DNA from: Utricularia gibba
Taxonomy: Eukaryota > Plantae > Magnoliophyta
Length of the DNA stretch: 64,000 bases
Assembly: GCA_002189035.1 (NCBI GenBank)
Contig: NEEC01000004.1
Coordinates: 5,208,001-5,272,000, forward strand
Reading direction: 5' to 3'
Part shown: positions 4,109 through 56,640 of the stretch, piece by piece
Layout of the letters: each line of letters starts with the position of its first letter
Numbering within the stretch: the first letter of the stretch is position 1
Program-made: the position numbers and the translations under genes
Notes under the pieces: generated by a model
The model's database searches: none
What the model saw: only the letters and a program-made list of their open reading frames with translations
Told to the model about the DNA's origin: nothing

Positions 4109-4422
4109 AGTCAACAAAGGGAAAAAAAATCAGACAGAGGGACCTAAGTTCAAGCATGAACGAGAGGGTAGGGTGCATTTTGAGTTGGATTACTGTGCAC
4201 TCATCCACGTCCCTCGCCAGTTGGATGGAGATTGATCTGAAAAAGAAGCCAGACAGTGAAATTGACGATTTGGCGTCGTGTTTTTAGAGGGAGGAGCGCC
4301 GAGGAACGATTCAACGTGTTTGAAATATATACTGTGCAGTCTGCATGCAGCAAACTTGACCTGGAAACTTTCCATGCAGCTTCTGAAACCCTGAAATTTC
4401 CACAACTTCTCAGGCTATAAAT
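4109..4422 (+). promoter_or_regulatory. Proximal promoter of the PIP-like gene: W-boxes and TATA box
   Basis: AGTCAA (W-box, reverse) 4109-4114, TTGACC 4356-4361, TATAAAT 4416-4422, ~100 bp upstream of ATG 4518. Confidence 0.55.
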
Positions 4423-4517: not shown

Positions 4518-5264
4518 ATGCTGCTGCGTCTATTTGTTTGCGTATCTGTGCTGTTTTCGATGTGTTCCTCGAGCGTTTATTGTGCACGTCCCAATCCAGG
4601 GAATAACAGGGAACCTCTTTACGAGATCCGTGAAATGACTAATGAGGCTACAGGGCGTGGTGGAGAGATGAAGTTAAGGAAGTTGGGACCAAGTTTTTAC
4701 AGTTTTTTCGGAGGGATCAAGGTCTCCGGTCCGAGCCCTCCTAATGGGAACGAGAACAAGAATGGTGATATTTTGGGCGAACGAAAGGTCTCTGGCTCGA
4801 GCCCTCCTGGTGGAAATGCATACAAAGATGCTGACGTGGATGGGAATGCAAACAAAGACGCCGGGATTTGGGGAGAAAGGAAGGACTCCGGCCCGAGCCC
4901 TCCCAATGGAAACGGATACGAAGATGCTGATGCACTTCTGGGTGGGAGGAAGGACTCCGAGGGGCCAAGCCCTCCGGATGGAAACCAGGACAAAGAAGCC
5001 GGGATTTTGAGCGAACGGAAGGACACCGAGGGACCTAGCCCTCCCGATGGAAACCAGGACAAAGACGCCGGGATTTTGGGCGAACGGAAGGACACCGAGG
5101 GACCTAGCCCTCCCGATGGAAACCAGGACAAAGACGCCGGGATTTTGGGCGAACGGAAGGACACCGAGGGAACTAGCCCTCCCGATGGAAACCAGGACAA
5201 AGACGCCGGGATTTCGGGAGAAAGGAAGGACTCCGGCCCGAGCCCCGGTGACGGCCGTCACTAA
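4518..5264 (+). CDS. Secreted multi-repeat PIP/PIPL-like (SGP-rich) peptide precursor, 248 aa, intronless
   Basis: Signal-peptide-like N-terminus (MLLRLFVCVSVLFSMCSSSVYCA-RP), then 8 [S/E]G[P/S/T]SPP-type units; first unit GGIKVSGPSP and last unit RKDSGPSPGDGRH-stop resemble the PIP SGPS..G.H motif; upstream TATA box. Confidence 0.8.
   Translation: MLLRLFVCVSVLFSMCSSSVYCARPNPGNNREPLYEIREMTNEATGRGGEMKLRKLGPSFYSFFGGIKVSGPSPPNGNENKNGDILGERKVSGSSPPGGNAYKDADVDGNANKDAGIWGERKDSGPSPPNGNGYEDADALLGGRKDSEGPSPPDGNQDKEAGILSERKDTEGPSPPDGNQDKDAGILGERKDTEGPSPPDGNQDKDAGILGERKDTEGTSPPDGNQDKDAGISGERKDSGPSPGDGRH
4945..5240 (+). repeat. 69-bp (23-codon) coding tandem repeat
   Basis: gaaaccaggacaaag recurs at 4981, 5050, 5119 and 5188; full units 4981-5049, 5050-5118 and 5119-5187 differ by only 1-2 nt between neighbours. 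Confidence 0.97.
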
Positions 5265-5567
5265 TCGACGGGATAGTCGCGCTGATGTTCATTGCTCCAG
5301 CGCCTTCGTGATTCATTTGTTTATTTGATTCTATGTTTAAATAAAGTGATATTTATTTCTCTTCATTTATTTTTTTATTTGATTTAAATTTTGAATAAAT
5401 GACACGTGGCACGGACGCCATCAGGACGAAGGTGAAGACAAAACGTATCACACGCACTCGCAGACAGAGTTGCCTGAGAGAGGAGAATTAGCGGTGTCGG
5501 TGGATTTTGTAGGGTAGTAGTCTCTTGTGACGAAGGGAGTTCCATGTCTCCGGTGACGGAGTTTCTC

Positions 5568-6383
5568 ATGGAAGGTGGCGGCGCCGCGGGGGCGGTGTCT
5601 GGCCACGGGTGGCGAAGCGAGAAGAAGCCGTACAAGCCGAAATCAGGGAGCCCAATAAGCGGTCACGAATTCGGCTGGGGTCGTCCTCCACATCTGAGGC
5701 GGCGGCGCACGCCTACGACACCGCAGTCTACTTCCTGCGAGGGCCGACGGCGAAGCTCACAATATCCCCGGCGAAGTCTCCACCGGGGGTTTGAGGGATC
5801 TCTCTCTCTACTGTGGCTACATGGGAGAAGGCGGCGGAGGTGGGAGCCATGTTGAAAGTGATTGAAGCTATCTACGTGCTCTTTACTCATTCATCTTGCT
5901 CAATCACATCAGCTACAAATAAGGAGACTTGTTCCAGTTATTCCATCATTGTAGTACATCAGACTTGTTCCACTCTTCCATCATTCTATTTGATCTATTC
6001 CAATCTGTTGGTCAAATACCGATTCACTAGATCTCCATTTTTCACGTTGAGTTAGTTGGTACAGTAGTATAAATAGGTTACTTGTATTGTTTGCAATTCT
6101 CATTCACTTTTTTCTTGTTAAAGCTTTTGCAATCAATGCCTCTCCTCTTCTTTTGTCGGTTCCCTTGTTGTCCTTTTGTTGAGAGCAGCCATCATCTCCT
6201 TCGTTACTGTTTGTTGAGAGCAGCCACCATCAGTGTCATTGCACTGAAACCATCGTCTGTTTTTCGGTATAACAAGCCAGAGTCGATGCTCTTCACTCAA
6301 AAGTCGCGAAACCGGCGGCGCGCTCGCATAACGACAAAATTGATCTGAACAAGAAGCCCGACCCTGAAATCGAACTCACCTGA
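5568..6383 (+). pseudogene. DREB A-5 (DEAR/RAP2.1/RAP2.10-like) AP2/ERF repressor pseudogene
   Basis: EKKPYK followed out of frame by [12 protein letters not shown](R)[19 protein letters not shown]; KAAEVGA|RVDAL split by a solo LTR; C-terminal EAR-like IDLNKKPDPE then TGA 6381-6383. The GIRMRKWGKWV segment is missing and the conserved W is R. Confidence 0.9.
5850..6274. mobile_element. Solo LTR (425 bp), possibly Copia-type
   Basis: Begins TGTTG, ends AACA, 5-bp TSD AGCCA at 5845-5849 and 6275-6279, internal TATAAATA near 6068; removing it restores GGA GCC AGA GTC GAT GCT (GARVDA). Confidence 0.92.
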
Positions 6384-7581
6384 ACCGACGCCTGCATTTG
6401 GAATAACGACCGAATCTTTCCGGCGAGGTTCGTTTGTATATTTTTTCTTGGCTCCACTGTTTGCAGCGTTGAAAGACACCATTTCATCTCAGGCATATGG
6501 GGAGCCTCTGCGATGACGCCGAGCCGGTTCTGTGTACGGATTGATAACGGGCCTGGCACGTGAATCCGGCCCAAATATTGGGCTTGGACCCGGATTTAGA
6601 CGCCCATGATAGTGGACAACGAGGATAAAATTTCCCCACGTGAGCGTCACGTGCGCGCAAAGACAAATAACCTCCCTTAAATTAACAGCGTTATCCCGCA
6701 TTCATGAGTTGTACGCCAGAGTACTGGTCCCGTTGCGTGGCCCGGAGCCAGTTTCGCGCTACGGTGGGACGCGCACCCCGGCGGCCTGGTTAAGCGCCGG
6801 CGGTGAGGAGCGGTTCGGCTAGCGTGGTTGTTCTTAAGTAAATGACGTTTTTAACCCCTGATCCCGGTGGGAATCCGGCAGTAAAACTAGAGCAAATAAC
6901 GCTTACATGGCTCTCCGGTTTTTAAAGCAACCAGGGGGATAGAAACGTCTCAAAGGTAAAAAAAAGTGTTTACCGTTGGTTCCAGGTGCGCCGATCAAGA
7001 GAACCGTGGTCACCGTCGGGTACTCTTGGTTTCCACATTTTTGGAAACGGGGTACTCACAGCGGGGTCAGTAGAGGCAGTTCACGTCGGAGAGTTGCTCA
7101 ATGACTATCAATGGAAGGCGCGCCACCGCGAATACGGACCTGTGAGGCCCATGTGAACCCTCATCTTCGTGGAAGAGTCACAGGGCTTACGAGTTACAGG
7201 CTTGGGGAGTCTGTGTGTGGACAATGGAGTCAGGGAGGAGAGCATGGAATTATAAAATGGAAATAGTTGTTTGGAGCGCATTGGTGACTTGATGGGGCAT
7301 GTGGTGTGTGTGATGCATGAACAGAACCCTTTTCTCTCCGAGGAGAAAAAGCCAACTTGTCTCTGTTGATCAACAGTGGTTTTCACAGTGGAACGTCTTC
7401 TGCTTTGGGCCAGACATTTGTGGACTCTTTAGAGATCTGGTGAAGGTGTTAGTTTATTGGGGTGTTTTCTAGGTTTCAAGTGTGGAAGGGAGACCGGGTT
7501 CTTACTTCTTAGTGTGAACAAGGAAATGGAAGGGATTAGCTGACTCGAGATTCGGTTTCTCTGGTTCTCCTGGTGTTGAGA

Positions 7582-9090
7582 ATGTGGGATCTTAGCGGTT
7601 TGCCGGATCGAGGAAGGGGTGAAGATTACGACGAGAAGGGAAAGTGGGTTGGATCCGTTTCGAATTCCGGTTCATCGGCGGTTGTTGCAACGGAAGACGA
7701 GTACGGAGAAGCCACCGACGGTGGCAAGCGGAGTAGAACAACTGGGGTTGCCTCCTCGCCAGTGACGCGACAGTTTTTTCCGTTGTCGGACACGGAAACA
7801 CTTGTAGGTTGTGGCGGTGGGGTGAAACCACCGGATTTTCAGAGGGCTCATTGGGTGGGCGTTCAATTCGTCCAACCTGAACTCCCCGGCGGCGGTGGCC
7901 TGAGTCCCATGCCGGAAACGCAACAACCCCTCAAGAAAAGCCGCCGCGGGCCACGTTCCAGGAGCTCCCAATATCGCGGCGTCACGTTTTACCGGCGAAC
8001 CGGCCGCTGGGAATCCCACATATGGTAATAGCCAATCGTTCAAATCAAATAAACAACCAACCGAACCACATTTCTTTAACATCGACTTGTAATCGCTCGC
8101 AGGGATTGTGGAAAACAAGTTTATTTAGGTACCCTGTCCAGATTTCGCCATCTTCCCTGTTCTTCAGTGTTCTTAATGACAATGCGATTCTTCATTTACA
8201 GGCGGATTCGACACAGCCACGCTGCTGCGAGGTCTGTAAGACGAGTTCACAGCTTCTTAAGACAAATGAATGGGACTCTTACATTCTGATCACCTGTTAA
8301 TCACAGAGCTTATGACAGAGCAGCGATCAAGTTCAGGGGAATGGAAGCAGATACAAACTTCAGTTTACAGGATTACGAAGATGACTTTAAACAGGTATAC
8401 TAACTTTTCTTCCGTAATCAAGTGAAGGATCTTTCTTCTGACAGAGGGGTCATCTTAATTTCCAGATGAGGAATCTTACAAAGGAGGAATTCTTGCATGT
8501 TCTGAGGAGACAAAGCACAGGTTACCCAAAAGGAAGTTCTCTGTACAGAGGAGTGAATTTACACAAATGTGGGAGATGGGAAGCCAGAATGGGGCAGTTC
8601 TTTGGGAAAAAGTGATCTTTTCCCCCCGGTTTCTGATTTGTAAAACACTGATCTTTTAACTGGTTTTTGTTGCATTTTTCCAGATACGTCTACCTGGGCT
8701 TGTTCGATACCGAAATCGAAGCTGCACGGTGAGTTTGCTTGGTGAGTTCATGAAACTGCTCCTCAAGAATCGCTATTGATCGATCGTTTCTGGTTCAGGG
8801 CTTACGATAGAGCTGCAATCAGATGCAATGGCAAGGAAGCCGTCACAAACTTCGATCCCAGCACCTATGAAGATGAACTCAGCGCAGCAGGAGGATCAGG
8901 TGCAGCACAGTAACACCAGCTCCTGTTTCCCGATCTTCGTCTCCGGCCCCATCTCATAATCCCCGACGAGCTCCAAACTTTTGCAGGGACGCAGGCCGCA
9001 AGGGATTCTCCAGCACAGCACAATCTAGATCTCACCTTAGGGAGCTCCAGCAATGAAACAGGGGGTTTGCAGCTGCTGATCAGTAGGTGA
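7582..9090 (+). CDS. euAP2-lineage transcription factor with two AP2 domains (AP2/TOE3-like)
   Basis: [42 protein letters not shown]; exons 7582-8024, 8103-8128 (26 nt), 8202-8231 (30 nt; 31 expected), then 88, 146 and 45 nt exons, 8799-8899, 8987-9090 with HNLDLTLG. One C missing at 8217-8218 (probable assembly error); 3' end inferred. Confidence 0.9.
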
Positions 9091-10768: not shown

Positions 10769-13466
10769 ATGTTGGATTTCAGGGCATGGAATCGGAGGAG
10801 GAGGTCTGCGGGGAAGAATCCGTTATCTGATAAGCCGAGAGAGGTACCAGCGACTGATACATATTTTATCACAAATTTGTCAGTCTGTTGATTCTTGAAC
10901 CGAGGATGCTTTGTATTTTAACATGATTTACAGGAAAAAGACATTAGAGTGCTGAATGAAAAGCTTTACCCAGCCTTGTCTAGATCACAAGTTGGAAATG
11001 TGGAGGAACTTGCCGCGGGTGCGTTGCTTGTTATTATAATGGAGTAGTTATGAGAGTCTTAGTAATTTACAATCTCAGATCTGAAAATATAGGTCTCGAG
11101 AAGAGCGCCACGGATGCATCCTTGAAAGAAGAACTTGAAAAGATGTTCGCGCAGAGGGCTGCTTCTGAGAAGAGAATGGGTGTTTTGGATGCAGAGGTGA
11201 AAGAGATGAGGGTATGCGGTGCAGCTGTGAGGACTTCAAAAGAGCTTGAGAAACTAAGGATTGGTTTGGAGGAGAATTTGCTGGATACGAGTAAGAAGAT
11301 AGCCACTTTAGACGCGGAAAATGATCAGCTCTGTAAGATTCTATTTGGGAAGGAAAGGGTGATTCAAGATTTAAGGAAACATAGAGATGCGCTACAGGCT
11401 GACTTTAATGCTCTTAAGTTGAGGCTTGAGTCATCTGAGAAACATACAGCTTCCCTGGAATATGAGAAGCTTGTACTTGAGAAGGAGCTTGAAATCCGGA
11501 ACAAAGAAACTGAATTTAGTCACCAAATGGCTGGTGTTGCTCAAAAAAAGTATCAGGAGAGTGTTAGAAAAATTTCAAAACTAGAAGGAGAGTGCCATAG
11601 GCTCCGTCTTCTTGTTGGTAAGAAGTTCCCTGGATCCACCATGCTGATTAAAATGAAGAGTGGAGTTGAAAAACCCGGAAAAGAACTGGTTCAAATCAGG
11701 AGAATGAAATCAGCTCCATCTCTTACAAGTTCAGCGCAATCCTATGTGAATGCTTCTCCTGAGGTGCAAAAGAAACAGATAAAACTCCTGACACAGCAGC
11801 TACGTGCACTGGAACAGAAGAACAGGAACCTCGAGGATACACTTACTAAGAGATCTAGGGAACTTGATCTCTCCAGGTCGATGTATGCTCCTACAGCATC
11901 CAGATTGTCACAGTCACATGGGAAAACTGCTGCAGAACCGGGTAAACGCTTGAAACTCATGCACGAGACTTCTTTAGCAGTCTTATCTGATGTTGGTAGT
12001 GATGACAAAGGAAGCACTGCTGAGTCTTGGGCTTCTGCTTTGATATCAGAGCTTGAATATTTCAAAAATGAAAAGCAACTGGGAGCATTATCCCACCACC
12101 ATACGAAAACATCGAACATGGATTCCATCGACGACTTGGCTGACGTGGAAAAATTCTCTAGTGATAAGAATGCTGTTGTCTCTGCTTCAGCATGCCCATT
12201 TAATGGAAATTCTCCTAGTGAAATAGAGTTGGTAACCAAGTTGCTGAAGAAGCTTTTGCACTACAGCCAACTTTCCAAGAGAAATCCTCATGAGTTATTA
12301 GAAGATCTGAAAGTTCTGCTGGAGAAAAATAGTGTCCCTTATGCAGAGAAGAGTGGAGAAGGATTCACATCAGAGGTCCATGTATCCATATGCAAGATTC
12401 TTAAGCTCCTGCAAGGACTAGGCATGCGATGCCGAGACGAAGGTGCTTCAGAATCATCCATGAATTCCGGCTGCATGGTTCGATTATTTCTATGGAAATA
12501 CGAAGAACTATCTTTCTTATTGGAACGATTCGAGCAAACCTGCAAAGCCTTGCTGACTGGAGCAGCTGATTTGGAGCATTTTGCCCATCAAGTGGCTTCT
12601 GATTTGGAATGGATGATAAGTCACTGTTTTTCACTTCATGATGCCTCAGACGTGACAGATTCAATCAAAAGCCATCTAAATTGTGAAGAATCAAGAGTTC
12701 ATATTGATCTTCAGGATAAAAATGTACCTTCTGTCTCCATAGTGTCTTCTGCAACAGGCCACCACATTTCTTCCTGTGCAGCTAATGCTGTAGAACAAGG
12801 AGCGACATCAAAAGCCGATGACCAGTCGAATACGATCGCCACAAGTGCAGAGCCTGGCGCAAGTCACTCCACTGTTGCTGAAGAGAAAACCATAGCCCCC
12901 GCAAATCAGATGAAGGTTGAGTTAGAAGAAGTGGGAGAAACATGCCATGAGCAACATGTACAACAAAAACAGTAAGAAACAACAACTCTACTCTTCATCG
13001 TCTATTTCGATTTTTCAATGACTTGTTTCGCCATTGCAGTGTGACAATCAAGGAAGTTCCAAAGGATGACAAACAACACAGAGAACAGCTAGTAGAAAAT
13101 GTAAGTTTTCAGGGATTTCAAGTAAACTGCATGGTACTCAAGTTTGATGCACACTCCCAACTTCAGATGCAGGATCCGGAGATCGTTGCAGCTCCAAGAA
13201 TACTTGAACGGGAAACTACCATAACTTCCAATCCCATTCCTGACCAAGCTGCCACCCCCTGCTTCCCATCTCCTGTAAAAATGGTTCGAAAGCAATCATC
13301 CCTGCTAGAAAAAATGCTTGCCGAAGATCGAGCAGATCTCCCGAGTCCACAAGACTCCAGTCCTTGCAAGAAAAATGCAGACAGAGGCATCTTCACCAAG
13401 TTATTTGGGCGACAAGTGAAAACTGGAGATAAGAAAGCCCTTATACCAAGCTTCTTCAGAATGTGA
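10769..13466 (+). CDS. Filament-like plant protein (DUF869, FPP7-like), multi-exon
   Basis: Coiled coil with LEKELEIRNKE, KISKLEGECHRLRLLVGKK.PG, ESWASALISELEYFK, RLFLWKYEELS; short first exon MLDFRAWNRRRRSAGK resembles FPP N-termini; exact exon bounds approximate. Confidence 0.85.
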
Positions 13467-19222: not shown

Positions 19223-20074
19223 TCATGGCTGCAAAGGAACCCACTCAAAGCGTCCTTCCATCGGTAAATCTTTCTCTATGTCGTAGTTGTACCTGTTTAG
19301 ACGTAAAGCGTCACAATCAAATGCTTGCGGAGTTAGAGGAGGATAGTTTTAGAGTGACTGAGTGAGTTCTACTTGTCAAGGAACTCCTTGCGGAGCTGTT
19401 TTTCAGCAGCAGCGGTAAATTCTTCTAGTTCTTCTTCAGAAGGCATTTTTATCTCTAGAGCACACTTGGATTTACGCGTCTCCGCCGCAAAGTCGGAGTC
19501 GGACACGGTGTCGCTTGGATGTATCGGCATTTGTCTTCTGCAAAAATGCGAGGATGTAGTGAATGCTCTAGAAATTTGACGGTTACTTGCGAAACTTGAT
19601 AGTAGAAAGAGTGATCGGATGATTGATTACCTCTCGCCGGAATCCACGGCAACGACCGCCGACATAGAGAGCAGATTGTCAGTAACCTCGTTCTCCTAAA
19701 AATCAATACGAAAATTCAAAGCAAAGGCAGTTGAATTTTCAGAAATTAAAGGAGAACTCCATTAAATGTAAAGGGCACACAGCAAGCAACGTGATCATCG
19801 GAAATTTTAAAAAATACTATACCTCCAGATCAACGAAGTCCTCAACTACGTCTCTACCTCCGTTACTTGAGCAACACGATGCCAAAACGCCGTCGCTTTC
19901 ACCGCTACAACTCTCCGATCGCGCCGACGAACCAGAGTCCTCCTCCTCCGCCGCTGATACGCGACGACTTTTCACCTGTGAAGACGTCGTCGTCGATTCC
20001 GATTCATCTTCTCCGGCTTTTCTCTTTCTCCCCGCCGCGGTCGCCGTAGCCGTCATTCCGGATTCCGATTCCAT
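19223..20074 (-). CDS. KRP: Cyclin-dependent kinase inhibitor (ICK/KRP family)
   Basis: Exon 1 with SCCSSNG and FVDLE; EEELEEFTAAAEKQLRKEFLD; last exon YNYDIEKDLPMEGRFEWVPLQP-stop (CDI domain). Start codon inferred. Confidence 0.9.
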
Positions 20075-23000: not shown

Positions 23001-24945
23001 TCAGGACAAATACACAAGATTTAAGATTCTTACCCAAAAGAATTAAAATCATTTTAAAAAAATAGTTATTTTTTTTTCTCTCTTACATATTACGATTGTA
23101 ATTTCATTATTGAGAATGATCAAATCATTGAAATTTCGTAAAACCCAAATTTACATTCATGTTCTCACGGTCTAATGCATAGGATGATCATTTTGAAAAA
23201 ACTTTTTATTAGGATTTAAAATTTTAGAGTTTAGTATTTAGGGTTTAGATTTCAATATCCTATCCAATTCGTAACCCAGTGGCCTCTAAATTCCGGATTC
23301 AAATATCACTTGAAAATAGTTGTCTTTATAATAAAGAGTGATTGGTGTTAGAGCTAACTCATACACACGTTTTCAAGACCCAAATTCATGTGGATATATG
23401 TCTGAACGAAATTACTGGGGTTTAAGCTAGGGCTTGTTTGAGATTCTTCTAGAGTGTTGAAATTGGGGGATCTAGGGTTTGAAGGTTTCGTCTTTTTGTC
23501 CTAAAAGTTCAAAAAGAAATGGTAATAATGAAAGTTTTTTTGGTATATTGCATGTGTTTATGGTCACTCAGATGCGTTAGATTTTCATATCACGGACACT
23601 AGTGTGCAAGTAGACTGCTGTGAAACAGTGATGGTTGCACACAAGGCAATAATCTTAACAAAATCTATCCTTAACATCTGTCTTGAAGGCAGAGGGAGAT
23701 TCATTCATGAGGGCAAAAGACTGAAAGAACAGCTGAGTTTGTCTGAATTGGACACGCAGTCAGGGGCCCCGTTACAGGGGAGGAAACAAAGGAGAATCTC
23801 TGTGTAATGTCAGTGCACATTCCTCTAGAGCTCAGGTAAACTTGCATTACTCTTAAAGAAAAACAAATGCCTGTATAGAAAGAGGTTTTGCTGTCAACAA
23901 TCGCCATGGCCAAGCTGCTGTTTTCATTGCTTTCTCGCAGTGGAAACGGGAAGATCGATGCCGATGAAAAGGGAAGAGGGAGCAGATGAAAAAAAGGCGA
24001 ACTTTAATCTGCTGCGGTAAACGCGGCAAAGAAATGAAGAGGGATTGCTTAACCTAAAAATGGTGCAGTAGAGTAGTAATAACATTGACTACGACGAGAC
24101 GCTCGGGGCCCCTCATCGAGCCAAGGAACTATTGTTGTCCATTGCGTGAGATCCTGAATTCATAGATAGCTTTTATTGTTGTTATCAGACATGGAGCCAG
24201 TGGGGTTGATGCGGTAAATTCAGAAGCTCCGGGGGACTCGAGGTCTCACCATTGGCGTTTATGGGAGTTGTTTTCAAACAAGAAGATGAAAGCAACAGGG
24301 TTGTTTTCATACTGCATGGGAACGAATGTTGCACTATGAATCACTACAGTGCTCGTGATGATCCACCTTCTAACATGGGATAAATCGACCACACAGAATG
24401 CTGAATGCCGAAGTTGTTTCTGATACAAAAATGCTTCGTGTTGCAGTGATTGCACGAGGCTTGTGGGATGATTTGCAAGTATCATTTGGCAGTATGCAAT
24501 GCGTGGTATCTAATTCTGATTCCCAGAATGAGAGGGAACCTTCATAATACCTTCAAAATACAAGCGCATTAGGCGAAATGGGGAAGAATCCACTTTTTGG
24601 GTGACTGAGTTTTGCTTTTGCTGCAATGCTATGGAACAAACCCTAGGCCTTGTGTCCTCTGACTTGGGAAAGTAATCATGTATAAGTGTAAAAGGAAGGG
24701 CAAGTGTTTCAGTGTACAGAAAATTTCCTCTTTAAGACATTAAATCCCAACTGATGAACACACCTTTTTGTAATTGAAAGATAAATTTTTATTCACAAAT
24801 TCAGTGCTTAATGTCCCAAAAGCCGCAGATGTCATCTTTCAACAGTTGTTTTCTTTTTTCTTGACATTTGATGCTGAAAAAGAAAAGGGAAGAAGGAGGG
24901 GTCTGGTTTTTGATTGACCTGAGGGAAGCAATTTATGAGCTGAAG

Positions 24946-25797
24946 ATGTTTGGAAGCAAGGAAAGTCACATCTTTTCTTCCTTTCACTCACAACCCTCTA
25001 CATCCATTGCTGCTCTCAGTGATGCTGAAGCCTCTCAGATCCACCGGAACCACCGCCACCTGCTCTCCGGCACCTACACAACGAGTGGGGTTGAAGTTCC
25101 GGAGCAAGAACCTCCGAATACAAATGATGGGAAGCCAGGTGCAAAGAAGGATAGGCACAGCAAGATATACACGTCTCAAGGGCCACGAGATAGGAGAGTG
25201 AGGCTCTCCATTGGCATTGCTAGGAAGTTCTTTGATCTGCAAGAACTTCTAGGTTTCGACAAGCCGAGCAAGACCCTAGATTGGCTGCTCACCAAATCGA
25301 AGAATGCGATCAATGATCTGGTGCAGAAGAGGCAGAATGCTGATACTTCAGACAAAGGGAAGTCTCCAGAGGGTTCTAGAAAAAGACATGGAAGGGCTGC
25401 TAAGGATTCACAGGCGGTTGATCTTGTTAAGGAGTCACGGGTGAAGGCAAGGGCAAGGGCTAGGGAGAGGACAAGGGAGAAGATGCAGATGAGGAGCAGC
25501 CGAGACTTCAGCACCTTGAGCTCTTCAATCCCAATGCAGTACATGAATCACCCCAATGGATTCAATGATTATCAACAACTGAACCAAGATATGATCCAAG
25601 AATCTGTTGTGATCAAGATGAAAGCAAAGCCACATCCCTCGATTTTTGGTTTTCATCAGAACCTTATCATCTCTAGAGATTTCACTTCAAACTGCGCCAT
25701 CCCAGCTCCCTACACCTCCACTGAGAATTGGGATATCAGCAACCCTCAATCGAACGCATACTCTGCTTTGGATCAGTACAAGTTCAATGACAGGTAA
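24946..25797 (+). CDS. CYC: CYC/TB1-clade class II TCP transcription factor (CYC2-like)
   Basis: MFGSK start, TCP domain [50 protein letters not shown] domain [25 protein letters not shown] and FGFHQNL motifs; possible intron at GACAG|GTAAAT just before the stop. Confidence 0.95.
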
Positions 25798-27779: not shown

Positions 27780-29246
27780 TCAGTTATCTTTCTTAGCAAT
27801 CTTGAACCACTCGGTGTGGAAAGATCCAGCCACATCCACCCTTTCGTATGTGTGAGCACCAAAGTAGTCTCTCTGAGCTTGAACCAAATTCGCAGGAGAC
27901 CGTTCCCTTCGATAGGTATCGAAGTAAGCAAGACTTGCAGACATACCTGGGGTGCTAATGCCAGAGTTGATGGCAAGACACACCACTCTCCTCCATCCAG
28001 CCTGGCGGTCGATAATTTCTTTTGCAAATTCTGGATCCACAAGGAGGCTAGCAAGCTCAGGGTTTCTATCGTACGCCTTCTTGATCCGGTCTAAGAAGAT
28101 AGCGCGAATGATGCAGCCTCCTTTCCAGATCCTGGCTAGTTCCCCGAGTTGCAGGTTCCACCCCTTCTCTATGCTCTTTGCACGTATCAGATTCATCCCT
28201 TGTGCATAGCTGCAGATTTTAGATGCATACAGCGCTTGCCTGACATCATCAATTAGTTTTTTCTTGTCAACATGCTGATCGGTTAGAGCATCATCAAAGC
28301 CACTGGACTTGAAGACTTTGGCAGCAGCAGTTCTCTCCTCCTTCAGGCCACTCAAAAATCTGGAATCCAGAGAAGCTTCAATCGTTGGTGCAGCAACTGA
28401 TAGTTCAGCAGCCTGCTGAACTGTCCATTTCCCAGTTCCCTTCATCCCAGTTTTGTCCAACACTTTGTCAACTAGATGCCCATCCCCCTTGTCATCCTTG
28501 ACTCGAAATATATCTGCAGTGATTTCAATCAAGAAGCTTGATAACTCTCCCTTGTTCCAGTCTGAAAATGCATCAGCCAGCTCTTCATTCGTCAGTTTTC
28601 CAGCAGTTTTCAAAACATCATACGCCTCAGCAATCAGCTGCATATCACCATACTCGATTCCATTGTGGACCATTTTAACGAAGTTTCCAGCTCCACCTTT
28701 TCCTATATATGTCACGCAAGGGCCACTATCGGCAACGAAGGCAGCAACTTTGAGAAGAATGTCTTCCACGTACTTGTAAGCTTCAAACGAGCCTCCAGGC
28801 ATCAGAGATGGGCCATGGCGGGCGCCTTCTTCTCCACCAGAAACTCCCATGCCGAGGTACAGAAGGCCTGATTCTGCAACAGCCTTCTCCCTTCGCTCAG
28901 TGTTCTCGTACCACTCATTTCCACCGTCTATTATGCAGTCTCCTTCCTCCAAATGGGCAGTAAGTGTTTTAATTGTAGCATCCACAGGGGCACCAGCCTT
29001 GACAAGAATGATGATGGCACGAGGTTTCTGGATGGATTCAACAAAGGATTTGGGATCATGGTAACCGTACAAGGGAAGGTTGCCTTCCAGTTTCGCCCTT
29101 TCGACAGTCTCGTCCACCTTAGAGGTTGTCCGATTGTAAACAGAGATGGGAAAACCTTTCTCAGCAATGTTAAGGGCTAAGTTTTGCCCCATAACAGCCA
29201 GGCCAACAAGACCTATTCTCGTCAACGGTTTTGATGTATGAGCCAT
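27780..29246 (-). CDS. PGD: 6-phosphogluconate dehydrogenase, decarboxylating (PGD2-type, intronless CDS)
   Basis: Complete 488-aa ORF: RIGLVGLAVMGQNLALNIAEKGFPISVYNRT, FVKMVHNGIEYGDMQLIAEAY, QAQRDYFGAHTYER; no transit peptide. Confidence 0.98.
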   Translation of the reverse strand: MAHTSKPLTRIGLVGLAVMGQNLALNIAEKGFPISVYNRTTSKVDETVERAKLEGNLPLYGYHDPKSFVESIQKPRAIIILVKAGAPVDATIKTLTAHLEEGDCIIDGGNEWYENTERREKAVAESGLLYLGMGVSGGEEGARHGPSLMPGGSFEAYKYVEDILLKVAAFVADSGPCVTYIGKGGAGNFVKMVHNGIEYGDMQLIAEAYDVLKTAGKLTNEELADAFSDWNKGELSSFLIEITADIFRVKDDKGDGHLVDKVLDKTGMKGTGKWTVQQAAELSVAAPTIEASLDSRFLSGLKEERTAAAKVFKSSGFDDALTDQHVDKKKLIDDVRQALYASKICSYAQGMNLIRAKSIEKGWNLQLGELARIWKGGCIIRAIFLDRIKKAYDRNPELASLLVDPEFAKEIIDRQAGWRRVVCLAINSGISTPGMSASLAYFDTYRRERSPANLVQAQRDYFGAHTYERVDVAGSFHTEWFKIAKKDN

Positions 29247-30077: not shown

Positions 30078-32101
30078 TTACACGCCAAAATTGCACATCT
30101 GCAAGAACTCCATTTCACTGTCGACATATGTACTCCAGAACTGCTTGTAACTGTTCATGCCAATATCAAGCCACGGCTTCATATCTCCGTTGAAATGGAT
30201 CACAGCGCCATTCTTGATCTCATCGATGCTGATACTGGGATTGATCCCCAGCCCCAGTACATGCCACTTCTTGTCCAGGGGTTTCGTTTTGGAGTAAAAT
30301 GTAACGAGTCCGGCCGGCAAGGTACCGAGTTGCCATAATGTTCGGTCTTTATTCTGATCAGTTTCATGGGCAGAAGAGTTGTGTTAGCAGGAATGGATAT
30401 GTGTGCAGGAATGGATGAAGTACGGAATGTGTAAAGCTTACCAGATTCTGCCAATAATGATAGTCCTGAGTGCATTTTTCTCTTCGCCAAGCATCCAGAT
30501 CGAACATGTTTAGACCAAATGCCCAGGCACATGCCTTTGGATTGAACTTCTCTTTGATACGAGGGTGTGAGAAGTTGAGATACTTTGATAAGCGGTGGAA
30601 GGATCCGAAGCAGGTGTTGACGGCTGCATTCACCTTCCCTTCCATGTCAATTTTCCACAAGGCTGTCAAATCTTTCTGAACCACAACGTCATCGTCTAGA
30701 AAAAGAATCTTGTGCAGCTTTGGGTATAGCTCAGGGAGGTAGAATCTCAGGTGATTAAGCATTGAAATGTACTTGGGGTTCCTGAATTTCATGTTGCTTA
30801 TGTCTTTTGTGATATTGTCGGACCTGTTTTCAAAGTAAAACTTCTTTACACTGGCCGATTTCAGTTGCTTCAACACTGGAACATATGAGGAGTTTAAGAA
30901 CTTGAAATCATCCACAGCCTTTATCTCAATATGTGCTCCTCCTTTTACTGGTCTCATCTTAAACCAAACCTTTGTAGCAGCATAGTTCATCCGCTCTGTA
31001 ACAATGTGGATAACATGCTTCCATGGCTCCTCTGCGTTCTTGACAATCGAGTTTACCACCACTGAAAGAGCAATCACATTGTCCGAAAATACAGCATAGT
31101 GGTATAAACTTGGGTCTTCAAATTCAGCCTCTGGCTCATCATCCACGTACTTTTCAGGATGCGCAATTCTCTCCTCAAGAAGCCTCATTGCAAGGCAATG
31201 GAGACTTTTAGGGGATGATCTTGCGGCAATGGAACTGGCAACAGCCCCATTTTTCTTGGCCTTCATGAGCAACTCATAGACTGCGAAAATTGTATCCTTT
31301 AGTTTCTGTATCTTCAACTGATTATCATAAGCCTCCTTGGTCTCTCCAACCATTAGCCTGACAACCTTTACCTTATCTTTCACCTCCTTCTCAAATTGTC
31401 TAAGCAAATCTTCATCAATCGGATCTTCAGATTCCAAAAACGCATTACGATAATTCTCCTTCATTTGAAGATCTGTGATACTCTGAGCCATGTCTTCGAA
31501 CACCTTCAGCTGCTTAGATATCTCAAGTTTGAGATTCCTAGCATAAGCGCCATATGCATTAACCAAGGCAACATGATTATTTGTTTGTTCACGTATCGAA
31601 TCTAATCTAGTCTTCCCAGCATCCGATTGCAAAGCTAAAAATGCCCTACGCACATGAGCGTTTCCACTTGTGTCCTTACCCTGTTCCAAAAAAAAGTTAA
31701 ATTTTCCATCCCTACGAAGCGCATCTGAAACCAAAATTTGAATGATAACGAAGGAACCAGCCAACATGATTTGAAGTTTGTTTCTTGATGTTAAAATGCT
31801 CTGGATCAGGCTAGAAAATGATAATCAGAGAGCAGCACATATTCCTAACGACTACAACGAGTGAATCGAAAACAAGCCAATGAAATCATTGAAATAAACG
31901 AGATTCAAAACATCCGAGACTCAAAACGAGAAGAACACTGACCGCATCTCCCCGCGGAGGGCGTGATTTCATAAGCACCGAGAAAGTGGCAAGAAACAGC
32001 AGCGTAAACATGGCGGAAAAGAAGACTCGGTAGCTACAGAAGCCTCGTGCCGCCGATCCGCTTCCCGATCCGACTCGGCCGCCGCGGGCAGCCATGGCCA
32101 T
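30078..32101 (-). CDS. GAUT9: Galacturonosyltransferase, GT8 family (GAUT8/9-like), 3 exons
   Basis: N-terminal TM (FFSAMFTLLFLATFSVL), PKSLHCLAMRLLEERI, YHYAVFSDNV, LNHLRFYLPELYPKLHKILFLDDDVVVQKDL, TLWQLGTLPAGLVTFY, HFNGDMKPWLDI. Confidence 0.93.
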
Positions 32102-55239: not shown

Positions 55240-56640
55240 TCAGACATGTGTGGCTGATTTGGTGGATGGTCTGTGCTTCAACCGGTAAAGACTTATGTTC
55301 CTGTAACTGGGTGAAGATTGAACTGAATGATCCATGTTTTCATGAACTGTCATGGGCTTTATTGATCTGCAGAATGCAGCTGGATTTGCCTGCAAAACTG
55401 GGGATTTTTCAATGGAAAAGATTGACTGCGGAAGCCTTTGAGGCTTCCAGGGGCTCATCGATTCTTGATGTTTCTGGTACCCTCTCTGTGATTGTTCTGA
55501 TCTCTGGGATGCTTTCCTAGAGTTGCTGATGGCGGAATGATCCCGGGAAAGGCCCAAGAGGGTGATGCTGTGCAGCTGATGAACGCCGGTCCGTACGCAA
55601 ATATCGATGGAGATGTCGGGCAACTCCGGTGAACAGTATGCCACTGGGATCCTGGAAAGCATGGCGACTGAGGGTACCAATTCAGCATCTGTTCCTGCAA
55701 ACCTTTCTTCCCCATATCATGCCTTGAAGTTGAGATGGAGGATTTAGATGCAGCCCAACTCCCTGGTTCTCGATATGGATGCCAGCCATTGCTTGAGCTG
55801 CTCTTCAAAGAAGACGCCATTGGATGATCCATTCCCAAAGTCTGGACACCAGTTGCATGAAGAGACTTCACAGTGGAATGCTTGATCTTACGCCGGCCGG
55901 CGCCAAAAGGAACATTCCTCGTGACACCACCAGCAGTCCAGTATCTCCGGCAGCTCTTGCAGAAATGCCGAGGTTGATTGGCTTTGTAGTTATTGAAGTA
56001 ACAGAATTTTGTATGCTTGCTATCACACCGAGGGCATGGAAGAATCGCTTCTGGCTTCTGTAAAGGTTTCTCCATCGGCACGCCGGTCTCTGCCCGCTCT
56101 GCAGTTTCAGATAATTTAAGCCCTTGAGAATCATCACTCTCGAGAGCCCCTGCGCCTTCTTCCCCTGGCATCATCATCGTCACATTGCATCCTCCCATAA
56201 TCTGATTCAGTACATATGACAAGATGAAGGAGAACATACAACATGACATTGAAGCAGGGGACAGAATGAAACTCATGATGAATGTTCTACTTCTGGGTTA
56301 CTGTAAACTGTTTCTCCCAAAACGAAATCATCGACACCACAACTACGTGAAATCGAATTCAGGAAAAAACTGCATCCCATCAAATGAATCGTAATCAGCG
56401 TATACAGATGAAGAAAACCATCGGGCTCAAGATCAACCGCGATCAGTCATATGCATCAACAGCAAAAGGGTAACTCCAAACACCGCCATTTCTCACCTGG
56501 TCCGATTCTGAGGGTTCCTGATTCGCCGCCGAACACCCATCTTTGCACGAAAGATGAGATTCTTGGTTCCGGTGACAAATCTTCGGCAACGCAATGGTTT
56601 TCCCAAAAAGCTTAATTCTTGGATCCTTTACCTCCGGCAT
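55240..56640 (-). CDS. CDF: Cycling Dof factor (CDF-type), C-terminus frameshifted as assembled
   Basis: [15 protein letters not shown] (TPL-binding motif), Dof domain [47 protein letters not shown], then RIDEP and [11 protein letters not shown] in two other frames. Confidence 0.85.

Follow-up and report, generated by a model that had tools for sequence, protein, structure and literature searches.

Introduction

Precursors of PIP peptides that carry more than one motif have been described both in Arabidopsis, where the multi-motif group consists of PIP2, PIP3 and PIPL1 (PMC4154866, PMC4526919; family f1528 in PMC4526923), At1g49800 having been named prePIPL1 (PMC4154866, PMC4526919), and in apple, where 13 PIP genes encode one to seven motifs each (PMC11726410). 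In two of the apple proteins, MdPIP2 (MD02G1179300; 204 amino acids, 7 motifs) and MdPIP12 (159 amino acids, 5 motifs), conserved spacers were proposed as cleavage sites; both fall into one cluster with AtPIP2 and AtPIP3, and pathogens induce them (PMC11726410). For PIP2 and PIP3, the peptides of either motif have been assayed in Arabidopsis, where those of the second motif affected lateral roots (PMC4526923), and PIP1 binds the ectodomain of RLK7 with a dissociation constant of about 0.5 uM (PMC11649690). Precursors with several CEP or CLE domains are well known already. Here we compare these systems with a gene found in 64,000 nucleotides of DNA from Utricularia gibba (contig NEEC01000004.1, positions 5,208,001 to 5,272,000 of the forward strand; this whole stretch is called the window below), which encodes a putative secreted precursor with eight tandem PIP-like units.

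Phytocytokine genes are small and repetitive, and are often overlooked or misnamed by annotation pipelines. A preceding inspection of the letters of the window (the sequence-only reading) had started from the premise that PIP precursors carry one or two motifs, which is outdated in view of the seven and five motifs of MdPIP2 and MdPIP12 (PMC11726410) and of the relatives reported below, which have up to 7. As the polyprotein layout of PIP precursors is already published, the eight to nine units of this locus are a quantitative difference only; what is new here is the difference in unit number within the species together with a set of divergent, freshly amplified units that carry an extra Glu, and nothing else. 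We consider it likely that the gene encodes a multi-unit PIP/PIPL phytocytokine prepropeptide of the PIP2/PIP3/PIPL1 clade, situated at a PIP3-type locus and giving several ligands per transcript.

Homology to multi-motif PIP precursors

Searching 1.8 billion representative sequences with phmmer returned multi-unit plant proteins from Telopea, Catharanthus, Olea, Helianthus and Fraxinus, the best match being Telopea speciosissima XP_043709040.1 (E 3.9e-9). A family profile made from seven members, the window protein among them, extended this to 136 angiosperm proteins, which come from rosids and asterids, from the early-diverging eudicots Ranunculus, Stephania, Macleaya and Nelumbo, from Dillenia, and from Aristolochia, a magnoliid. 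Many of them are named, and are then called "PAMP-induced secreted peptide 2" or "precursor of CEP16-like", and blastp of the window protein against matches so named gives E values of 3e-21 to 3e-13. In UniProt, CEP16 is At1g49800. All members of the alignment share a period of 22 residues, made up of a 12-residue unit [IVR]-K-x-S-G-P-S-P-x-x-G-[HN] and a 10-residue spacer; the columns GPSP, G, L-G and K are invariant, and the spacer keeps Ala, Leu and Gly. Since the period is common to every member, unit and spacer together are old. Judged by these homologies, the precursor is a member of the PIP2/PIP3/PIPL1(=CEP16) multi-motif clade of the PIP/PIPL family, and the proposal that many tandem units stand on one PIP-type precursor is borne out by the relationship to proteins named PIP2 or CEP16-like and by the identical period of unit plus spacer.

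Within this family the window protein is divergent: it has Pro for Gly after GPSP, its internal units end in Asn, its spacers are acidic, and its last unit ends in GDGRH, an ending also found in Stephania. Counting units by regular expression in a length-limited sample of 126 relatives gave mostly 2–4 units and a maximum of 7, so that 8–9 units lie at the top of the range among the PIP-type arrays compared, and the gene is an unusually long member of the family and not a new system. The exact precursor sequence has no entry in the protein collection searched.

Some public records of relatives are misnamed, the Telopea member being called "translation initiation factor IF-2-like" and the one from Hibiscus syriacus "UDP-glucosyl transferase 84B2". 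Two Tanacetum gene models have PIP-type units fused to retrotransposon domains.

The Arabidopsis precursors prePIP2 (At4g37290), prePIP3 (At2g23270) and prePIPL1/CEP16 (At1g49800), which share the clade by database naming and by family f1528, are alike in having a signal peptide (a putative one in the window protein) with an Arg after it, a variable region, tandem SGPS-type motifs (interrupted in units 4-7 of the window protein) with the last one at the extreme C-terminus, and an intronless gene. They are 84–108 amino acids long with two motifs that end in GxGH, whereas the window protein has 248 amino acids and eight units, none of them with an exact GxGH. The apple MdPIP2 and MdPIP12 share the single exon, the signal peptide (putative in the window protein), the tandem motifs with short conserved spacers and the intragenic duplication. 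When MdPIP2 is taken by its published description, the window precursor differs in its 8–9 units, in their internal Asn ends, in the half of them that are of the Glu-insert type, and in a copy number that appears to vary. The Telopea protein (247 amino acids; 40% identity over 184 residues) has 7 units of the form SGPSP(P)GxG[HN] with 10-residue spacers, several of the units ending in Asn and containing SPP as in the window. It differs in its basic or neutral spacers (KFTNGKTLGG), in the absence of Glu-insert units and in a spliced gene model.

Other families of small Pro-rich peptides were considered as well. The CLE motif has 12–13 residues, R-x-x-P-x-G-P-x-P-x-H-N. Precursors with multiple CLE domains, as presented in the part of PMC9532867 that cites Goad et al. 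2017, resemble the window protein in containing several Pro-rich ligands of 12–13 residues that start with Arg and end with Asn. The register of the window units is shifted, with Gly-Pro one position off and without the His before the terminal Asn, and CLE was rejected. IDA/IDL peptides (SGPS, (R/K)(R/K)HN and a variable tail) were rejected too, the units showing P-x-G-N without a basic pair or His-Asn. AtCEP9 with its five domains, the group II CEPs and the CEP+PIP hybrids of pea and Medicago (PMC9739355) follow the same polyprotein logic and have an SPGxGH-like C-terminus, and "Precursor of CEP9" is the closest named cluster that the ESM Atlas offers (score 0.87), which we treat as a lead only. 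The window precursor differs from CEP precursors in having no canonical 15-residue CEP domain, of which an N-terminal F-R-P-T part is a component; no unit contains GHSPG or a [VI]GH end, as the canonical CEP domain does ([PS]GHSPG[VI]GH; Ogilvie 2014), and this assignment was rejected.

Structure of the precursor and its units

The gene is an uninterrupted open reading frame on the plus strand (4518-5264), with its ATG at 4518 and its stop at 5262-5264, according to the listing of open reading frames and their translation. Its GC content of 0.55 makes it an island between an upstream flank at 0.30 and a downstream flank at 0.29. Its main features are:

4416..4421, plus strand: TATAAA box about 100 nucleotides 5' of the ATG, assigned by position and of presumed function
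4518..5264, plus strand: intronless precursor coding sequence, 248 amino acids and stop, identified by the uninterrupted frame and the GC contrast with the flanks
4518..4583, plus strand: putative signal peptide, residues 1-22, followed by A-R-P, from the hydrophobicity profile
4584..4715, plus strand: variable pro-region of 44 residues (23-66), with FYSFFGG just before unit 1, from the translation
4852..5235, plus strand: tandem array with a 69-bp period (Tandem Repeats Finder: 5.6 copies, score 503)
5340..5399, plus strand: two AATAAA polyadenylation-type signals at 5340 and 5394, 76 and 130 nucleotides past the stop, of presumed function

In the N-terminus, R4 stands before a hydrophobic core (residues 5-15; mean Kyte-Doolittle value 2.6) and a polar CSSSVYC stretch that runs into A-R-P, all of this by hydrophobicity profile only. 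The conserved Arg after the signal peptide, a feature of PIP/PIPL precursors (PMC4526919), is present in C-A-R-P at residues 22-25, and relatives have EA-R-P or SA-R-P (xA|RP) after a hydrophobic N-terminus at the matching position. The matching part of the relatives is an aromatic/Leu stretch, after which comes G-x-[IV]-K. Past residue 23 the precursor contains no Cys, 11% Pro and 18% Gly, with an isoelectric point (pI) of 4.65; the acidic spacers between units (net charge -2 to -3) have a length of 10 residues, with 11 and 20 at two places. Such a low-complexity protein is expected to be disordered.

Upstream of the gene, W-boxes had been put forward as a further sign of a PIP gene. The 600 bp before it contain two full boxes (4109, 4356) and one core (4262), where window-wide density would lead one to expect about 0.4 and 0.9, respectively; W-boxes are thus not clearly enriched, and this support is marginal at best.

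Two antisense open reading frames, of 195 residues (4674-5261, minus strand) and 167 residues (4697-5200, minus strand), overlie the array. They have no further support and are a by-product of the stop-free, GC-rich repeat.

The eight units that had been listed from the letters were all found in the translation with the exact sequence given there. They are given here with their scores against a unit profile made from 297 distinct repeats of the relatives, from which the window protein was excluded:

4716..4751, plus strand: unit 1, IKVSGPSPPNGN, canonical, residues 67-78, 14.6 bits
4782..4817, plus strand: unit 2, RKVSGSSPPGGN, canonical with SGSS variant, residues 89-100, 11.7 bits
4878..4913, plus strand: unit 3, RKDSGPSPPNGN, canonical, residues 121-132, 16.4 bits
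4947..4985, plus strand: unit 4, RKDSEGPSPPDGN, 13 residues with an extra Glu inside the SGPS core, residues 144-156, 2.2 bits
5016..5054, plus strand: unit 5, RKDTEGPSPPDGN, Glu-insert type, residues 167-179, 0.1 bits
5085..5123, plus strand: unit 6, RKDTEGPSPPDGN, Glu-insert type, residues 190-202, -0.4 bits
5154..5192, plus strand: unit 7, RKDTEGTSPPDGN, Glu-insert type with Pro to Thr, residues 213-225, -0.6 bits
5223..5261, plus strand: unit 8, RKDSGPSPGDGRH, extreme C-terminus, best family match, residues 236-248, 21.9 bits

Units 1, 2, 3 and 8, together with a further unit found in other data from the species (see below), score 11.6-21.9 bits, compared to 10.8 bits for the best of 200 shuffles of the whole protein. 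Of the core motif that defines PIP/PIPL peptides, S(G/A/V)PS (Hou 2014; Vie 2015), an exact SGPS is seen in units 1, 3 and 8 as well as in the extra allele unit, whereas unit 2 reads SGSS. Unit 7 has lost the core Pro besides having the Glu insert. Unit 8 ends in GDGRH directly before the stop, and thus at the extreme C-terminus without any extension, with one residue more than GxGH. The description of the protein as containing eight PIP-like peptides is generous in view of units 4-7, which are without an intact SGPS and score around 0 bits.

A separate repeat search gave a register identical to the 69-bp period of Tandem Repeats Finder. The 69-bp units that begin at 5005, 5074 and 5143 differ pairwise by 1, 1 and 2 nucleotides, the unit at 4936 is 10-11 nucleotides away from these three, and the older unit at 4867 is about 39 away. 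Judged by these distances, the lengthening of the array is very recent and intragenic, as the sequence-only reading had held on the strength of the three near-identical units, and the newest amplified copies are the least canonical units. Every length variant keeps to a multiple of 3 (units of 66, 69 and 96 nucleotides, and an indel of 36). Elsewhere in the 64-kb window no further units of PIP type were found in any frame searched.

Differences in unit number

We used read data from further runs, among them X1 and X2, DNA runs with the same species label, and X7, labelled "RNA?", these labels being guesses; X2 is possibly the same sample as the assembly of the window. The reads were available as contigs of 31-letter words. 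One site within the array distinguishes the data sets:

4837..4838, plus strand: indel site with 36 extra in-frame nucleotides in contigs of X1 and X2, which add the unit RKDSGPSPPDGN

This ninth unit, with LGE before it, scores 19.8 bits against the family unit profile. The odd 20-residue spacer of the window is explained by the orphan DGN tail of the deleted unit having been kept. The eight-unit form is found in a contig of X7 (4596-4903, 308 nucleotides), which has 100% identity with the window, lacks the insertion and lies inside the coding sequence. Unit number thus appears to be polymorphic within the species, 8 versus 9, provided that both forms are real alleles, and the suggestion that copy number may vary is supported to that extent by the difference between data sets. 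An assembly error in the window at the 36-nucleotide site is possible, and the X7 contig argues against it. The same contig, a single one of low depth from a run that is labelled RNA by guess, is a hint that the precursor is transcribed.

In X1, contigs over 4852-4988 have a word depth of 74-100, compared to 31-38 in the flanks (2-3 times), although the window has each of these words once. This hints at further length differences, and X1 may hold extra copies of this two-unit segment, word depth not being the same as a copy count.

Genomic neighbourhood

Downstream of the precursor gene the window contains the following:

5544..5855, plus strand: degenerate ERF-type AP2 fragment in two frames, without the N-terminal strands (Pfam AP2 E 0.0066, under the cut-off)
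7573-8028, plus strand: AP2-like exon, its motif read by eye (Pfam: no family)
11050..13466, plus strand: filament-like plant protein (FPP) gene (Pfam FPP E 4e-104; Atlas clusters FPP4/FPP7 nearest)
19226..19333, minus strand: KRP/ICK cyclin-dependent kinase inhibitor gene, final exon (Pfam CDI E 2.5e-8); further exons upstream of it may extend to about 20300
24868-25797, plus strand: TCP transcription factor
27783-29246, minus strand: 6-phosphogluconate dehydrogenase, intronless
30364-31767, minus strand: GT8 galacturonosyltransferase-like gene
about 42-47 kb: phage-type RNA polymerase (RpoT) gene
55455-56276, minus strand: Dof zinc-finger gene

The ERF fragment probably represents a DEAR-like pseudogene with more than one form in the species; at this place X1 has 18 other nucleotides in exchange for 69 (5540-5608).

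We take the order on Arabidopsis chromosome 2 to be PIP3 (At2g23270)-DEAR3-FPP7-KRP1-RpoTp. UGT84B1 (At2g23260) adjoins PIP3 and MRG1 (At4g37280) adjoins PIP2. Compared with this gene order, the window gene fits a PIP3-type locus, and the PIP3-like neighbourhood pointed out in the sequence-only reading is found in the form of the ERF fragment and the FPP and KRP/ICK genes downstream. PIP3 = At2g23270 is the sole code of this neighbourhood confirmed in a paper (PMC4154866); paper titles, taken as titles, agree with the codes for KRP1, RpoTp and UGT84B1 only, and no paper among those searched contains two of the codes. The loci of relatives fall into two types, one with an adjoining UDPGT gene (Aristolochia, Abrus) and one with an adjoining MRG (Tudor-knot/MRG) gene (Catharanthus, Hibiscus, Linum), which probably correspond to the Arabidopsis PIP3 and PIP2 loci, respectively. 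ERF, FPP and KRP genes were absent from the 10-kb flanks of eight homologues, and the Telopea locus has no ERF or FPP within 10 kb.

Alternative explanations

Several results weigh against reading the gene as a multi-unit PIP precursor at a PIP3-type locus. No Pfam model matches the precursor, and a word-index homology search was blank both for the full protein and for its N-terminal 110 residues. The strict GxGH ending is found in none of the 8 units, the last ending in GDGRH and the internal ones in NGN, GGN or DGN, and in units 4-7 the SGPS core is interrupted (S/T-E-G-P/T-S), with scores of about 0 bits against the family unit profile. The precursor is acidic, at pI 4.65 compared to 9.49 for MdPIP2 (PMC11726410). 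There is no UDPGT gene in the 4.5 kb of the window upstream of the gene, expression is supported by the single low-depth contig with its guessed RNA label, and within the coding sequence X1 differs from the window at 6 positions, 5 of them nonsynonymous and 1 synonymous, a pattern that would fit relaxed constraint, some of the short contigs possibly stemming from other repeat units. The strict GxGH motif failed, yet the endings observed are covered by the real variation of the family, because units with internal Asn ends and GDGRH occur in relatives too (Telopea, Olea, Catharanthus, Stephania). Similarly, the scores of units 4-7 are near zero because the extra Glu turns SGPS into S/T-E-G-P-S, and since an acidic residue directly before GPSP is also present in relatives, such as IKEGPSPGIGH in Helianthus and IKEGPSPGGKGH in Ranunculus, low scores are no proof of inactivity. 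It is possible, if on the unlikely side, that the gene is a true family member whose array is partly junk, with only units 1-3, unit 8 and the extra allele unit giving ligands, the Glu-insert units having arisen neutrally through slippage or unequal crossing-over, or else being spacer-like filler, and the gene maybe drifting. The gap between units 4-7 (2.2 to -0.6 bits) and the others (11.6-21.9 bits) speaks for this, as do the 5 nonsynonymous changes among the 6 of X1 and the two differences among units 5-7, which are both nonsynonymous and one of which removes the core Pro. In addition, the divergence of 1-2 nucleotides per 69 among the amplified units is close to the allelic divergence of the flanks (13 differences in 938 nucleotides), which would have left little time for selection to act. 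However, the frame is intact through every copy and in both alleles, the spacers of the Glu-insert units stay conserved, and the acidic residue of the Helianthus and Ranunculus proteins places the Glu-insert units within the variation of the family there. We regard as doubtful the further idea that the Glu-insert, Asn-terminated 13-mers (RKD[ST]EGPSPPDGN) are a new ligand subclass with a receptor preference of its own, very recently amplified under selection, with ligand dosage and mix varying between individuals through copy number.

The abundance of Pro and Gly, the absence of Cys and the S-P-P found in seven units would also suit a repetitive, hydroxyproline-rich, secreted wall protein of structural or glycoprotein-like kind, glycosylated at Ser-Pro-Pro and kept intact. 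We hold this to be very improbable, as the protein has no extensin-type SPPPP and no blocks of AP, SP or TP as in arabinogalactan proteins, bioactive peptides are released from the two-motif Arabidopsis members of the protein group to which its unit and spacer are homologous, and the basic pair before the units and the Asn/His ends fit the processing of the family. We give just as little credence to the near-identical units being an over-expansion of the assembly, or the reading frame being unexpressed DNA. Though the number of these units lacks an independent count, none of the 31-letter-word contigs spanning them, the array is covered piecewise by contigs from three independent DNA runs, and the junctions between units 4 and 5 and between units 7 and 8 are seen in contigs. 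Depth over contigs of repeated words is 60.7 in X1, compared to 30.6-38 in the flanks, and 6.8 in X2, compared to 2.2-5.4; this roughly twofold depth agrees with the window, where these words occur about 2 times on average, and argues against over-expansion. That the RNA-labelled run has a contig confined to the coding sequence argues against unexpressed DNA.

Proposed processing and significance

For the multi-unit PIP/PIPL prepropeptide that we favour, a course of events can be proposed by analogy with the family. The signal peptide would send the precursor into the secretory pathway, where prolines of the (S)GPSP core may be hydroxylated, and proteolytic cleavage would fall within the acidic spacers, ahead of the basic R/I-K of a unit and behind its terminal Asn or His; the basic residue pair before each unit and the Asn/His end fit the processing pattern of the family (PMC4154866). 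The freed peptides of 12-13 residues would be sensed by leucine-rich-repeat receptor kinases of subfamily XI, of the RLK7/CEPR type, and may have a role in immunity. With several units cut from one precursor, one transcript would thus yield several related ligands. The likeliest active ligands are the four canonical units and the C-terminal one in the nine-unit allele, the activity of the four Glu-insert units being uncertain. The length of the array may shift by unequal exchange or replication slippage, in steps of three bases.

The locus provides sequence evidence that PIP-type arrays differ in unit number within one species. If the Glu-insert units were indeed a ligand subclass of their own, the locus would show in nature how a peptide-hormone gene can evolve through the length of its array, with 8, 9 or more units. 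The locus is also well suited, as a natural experiment, to asking whether precursors with many units serve to raise the dose of a signal or to diversify its ligands.

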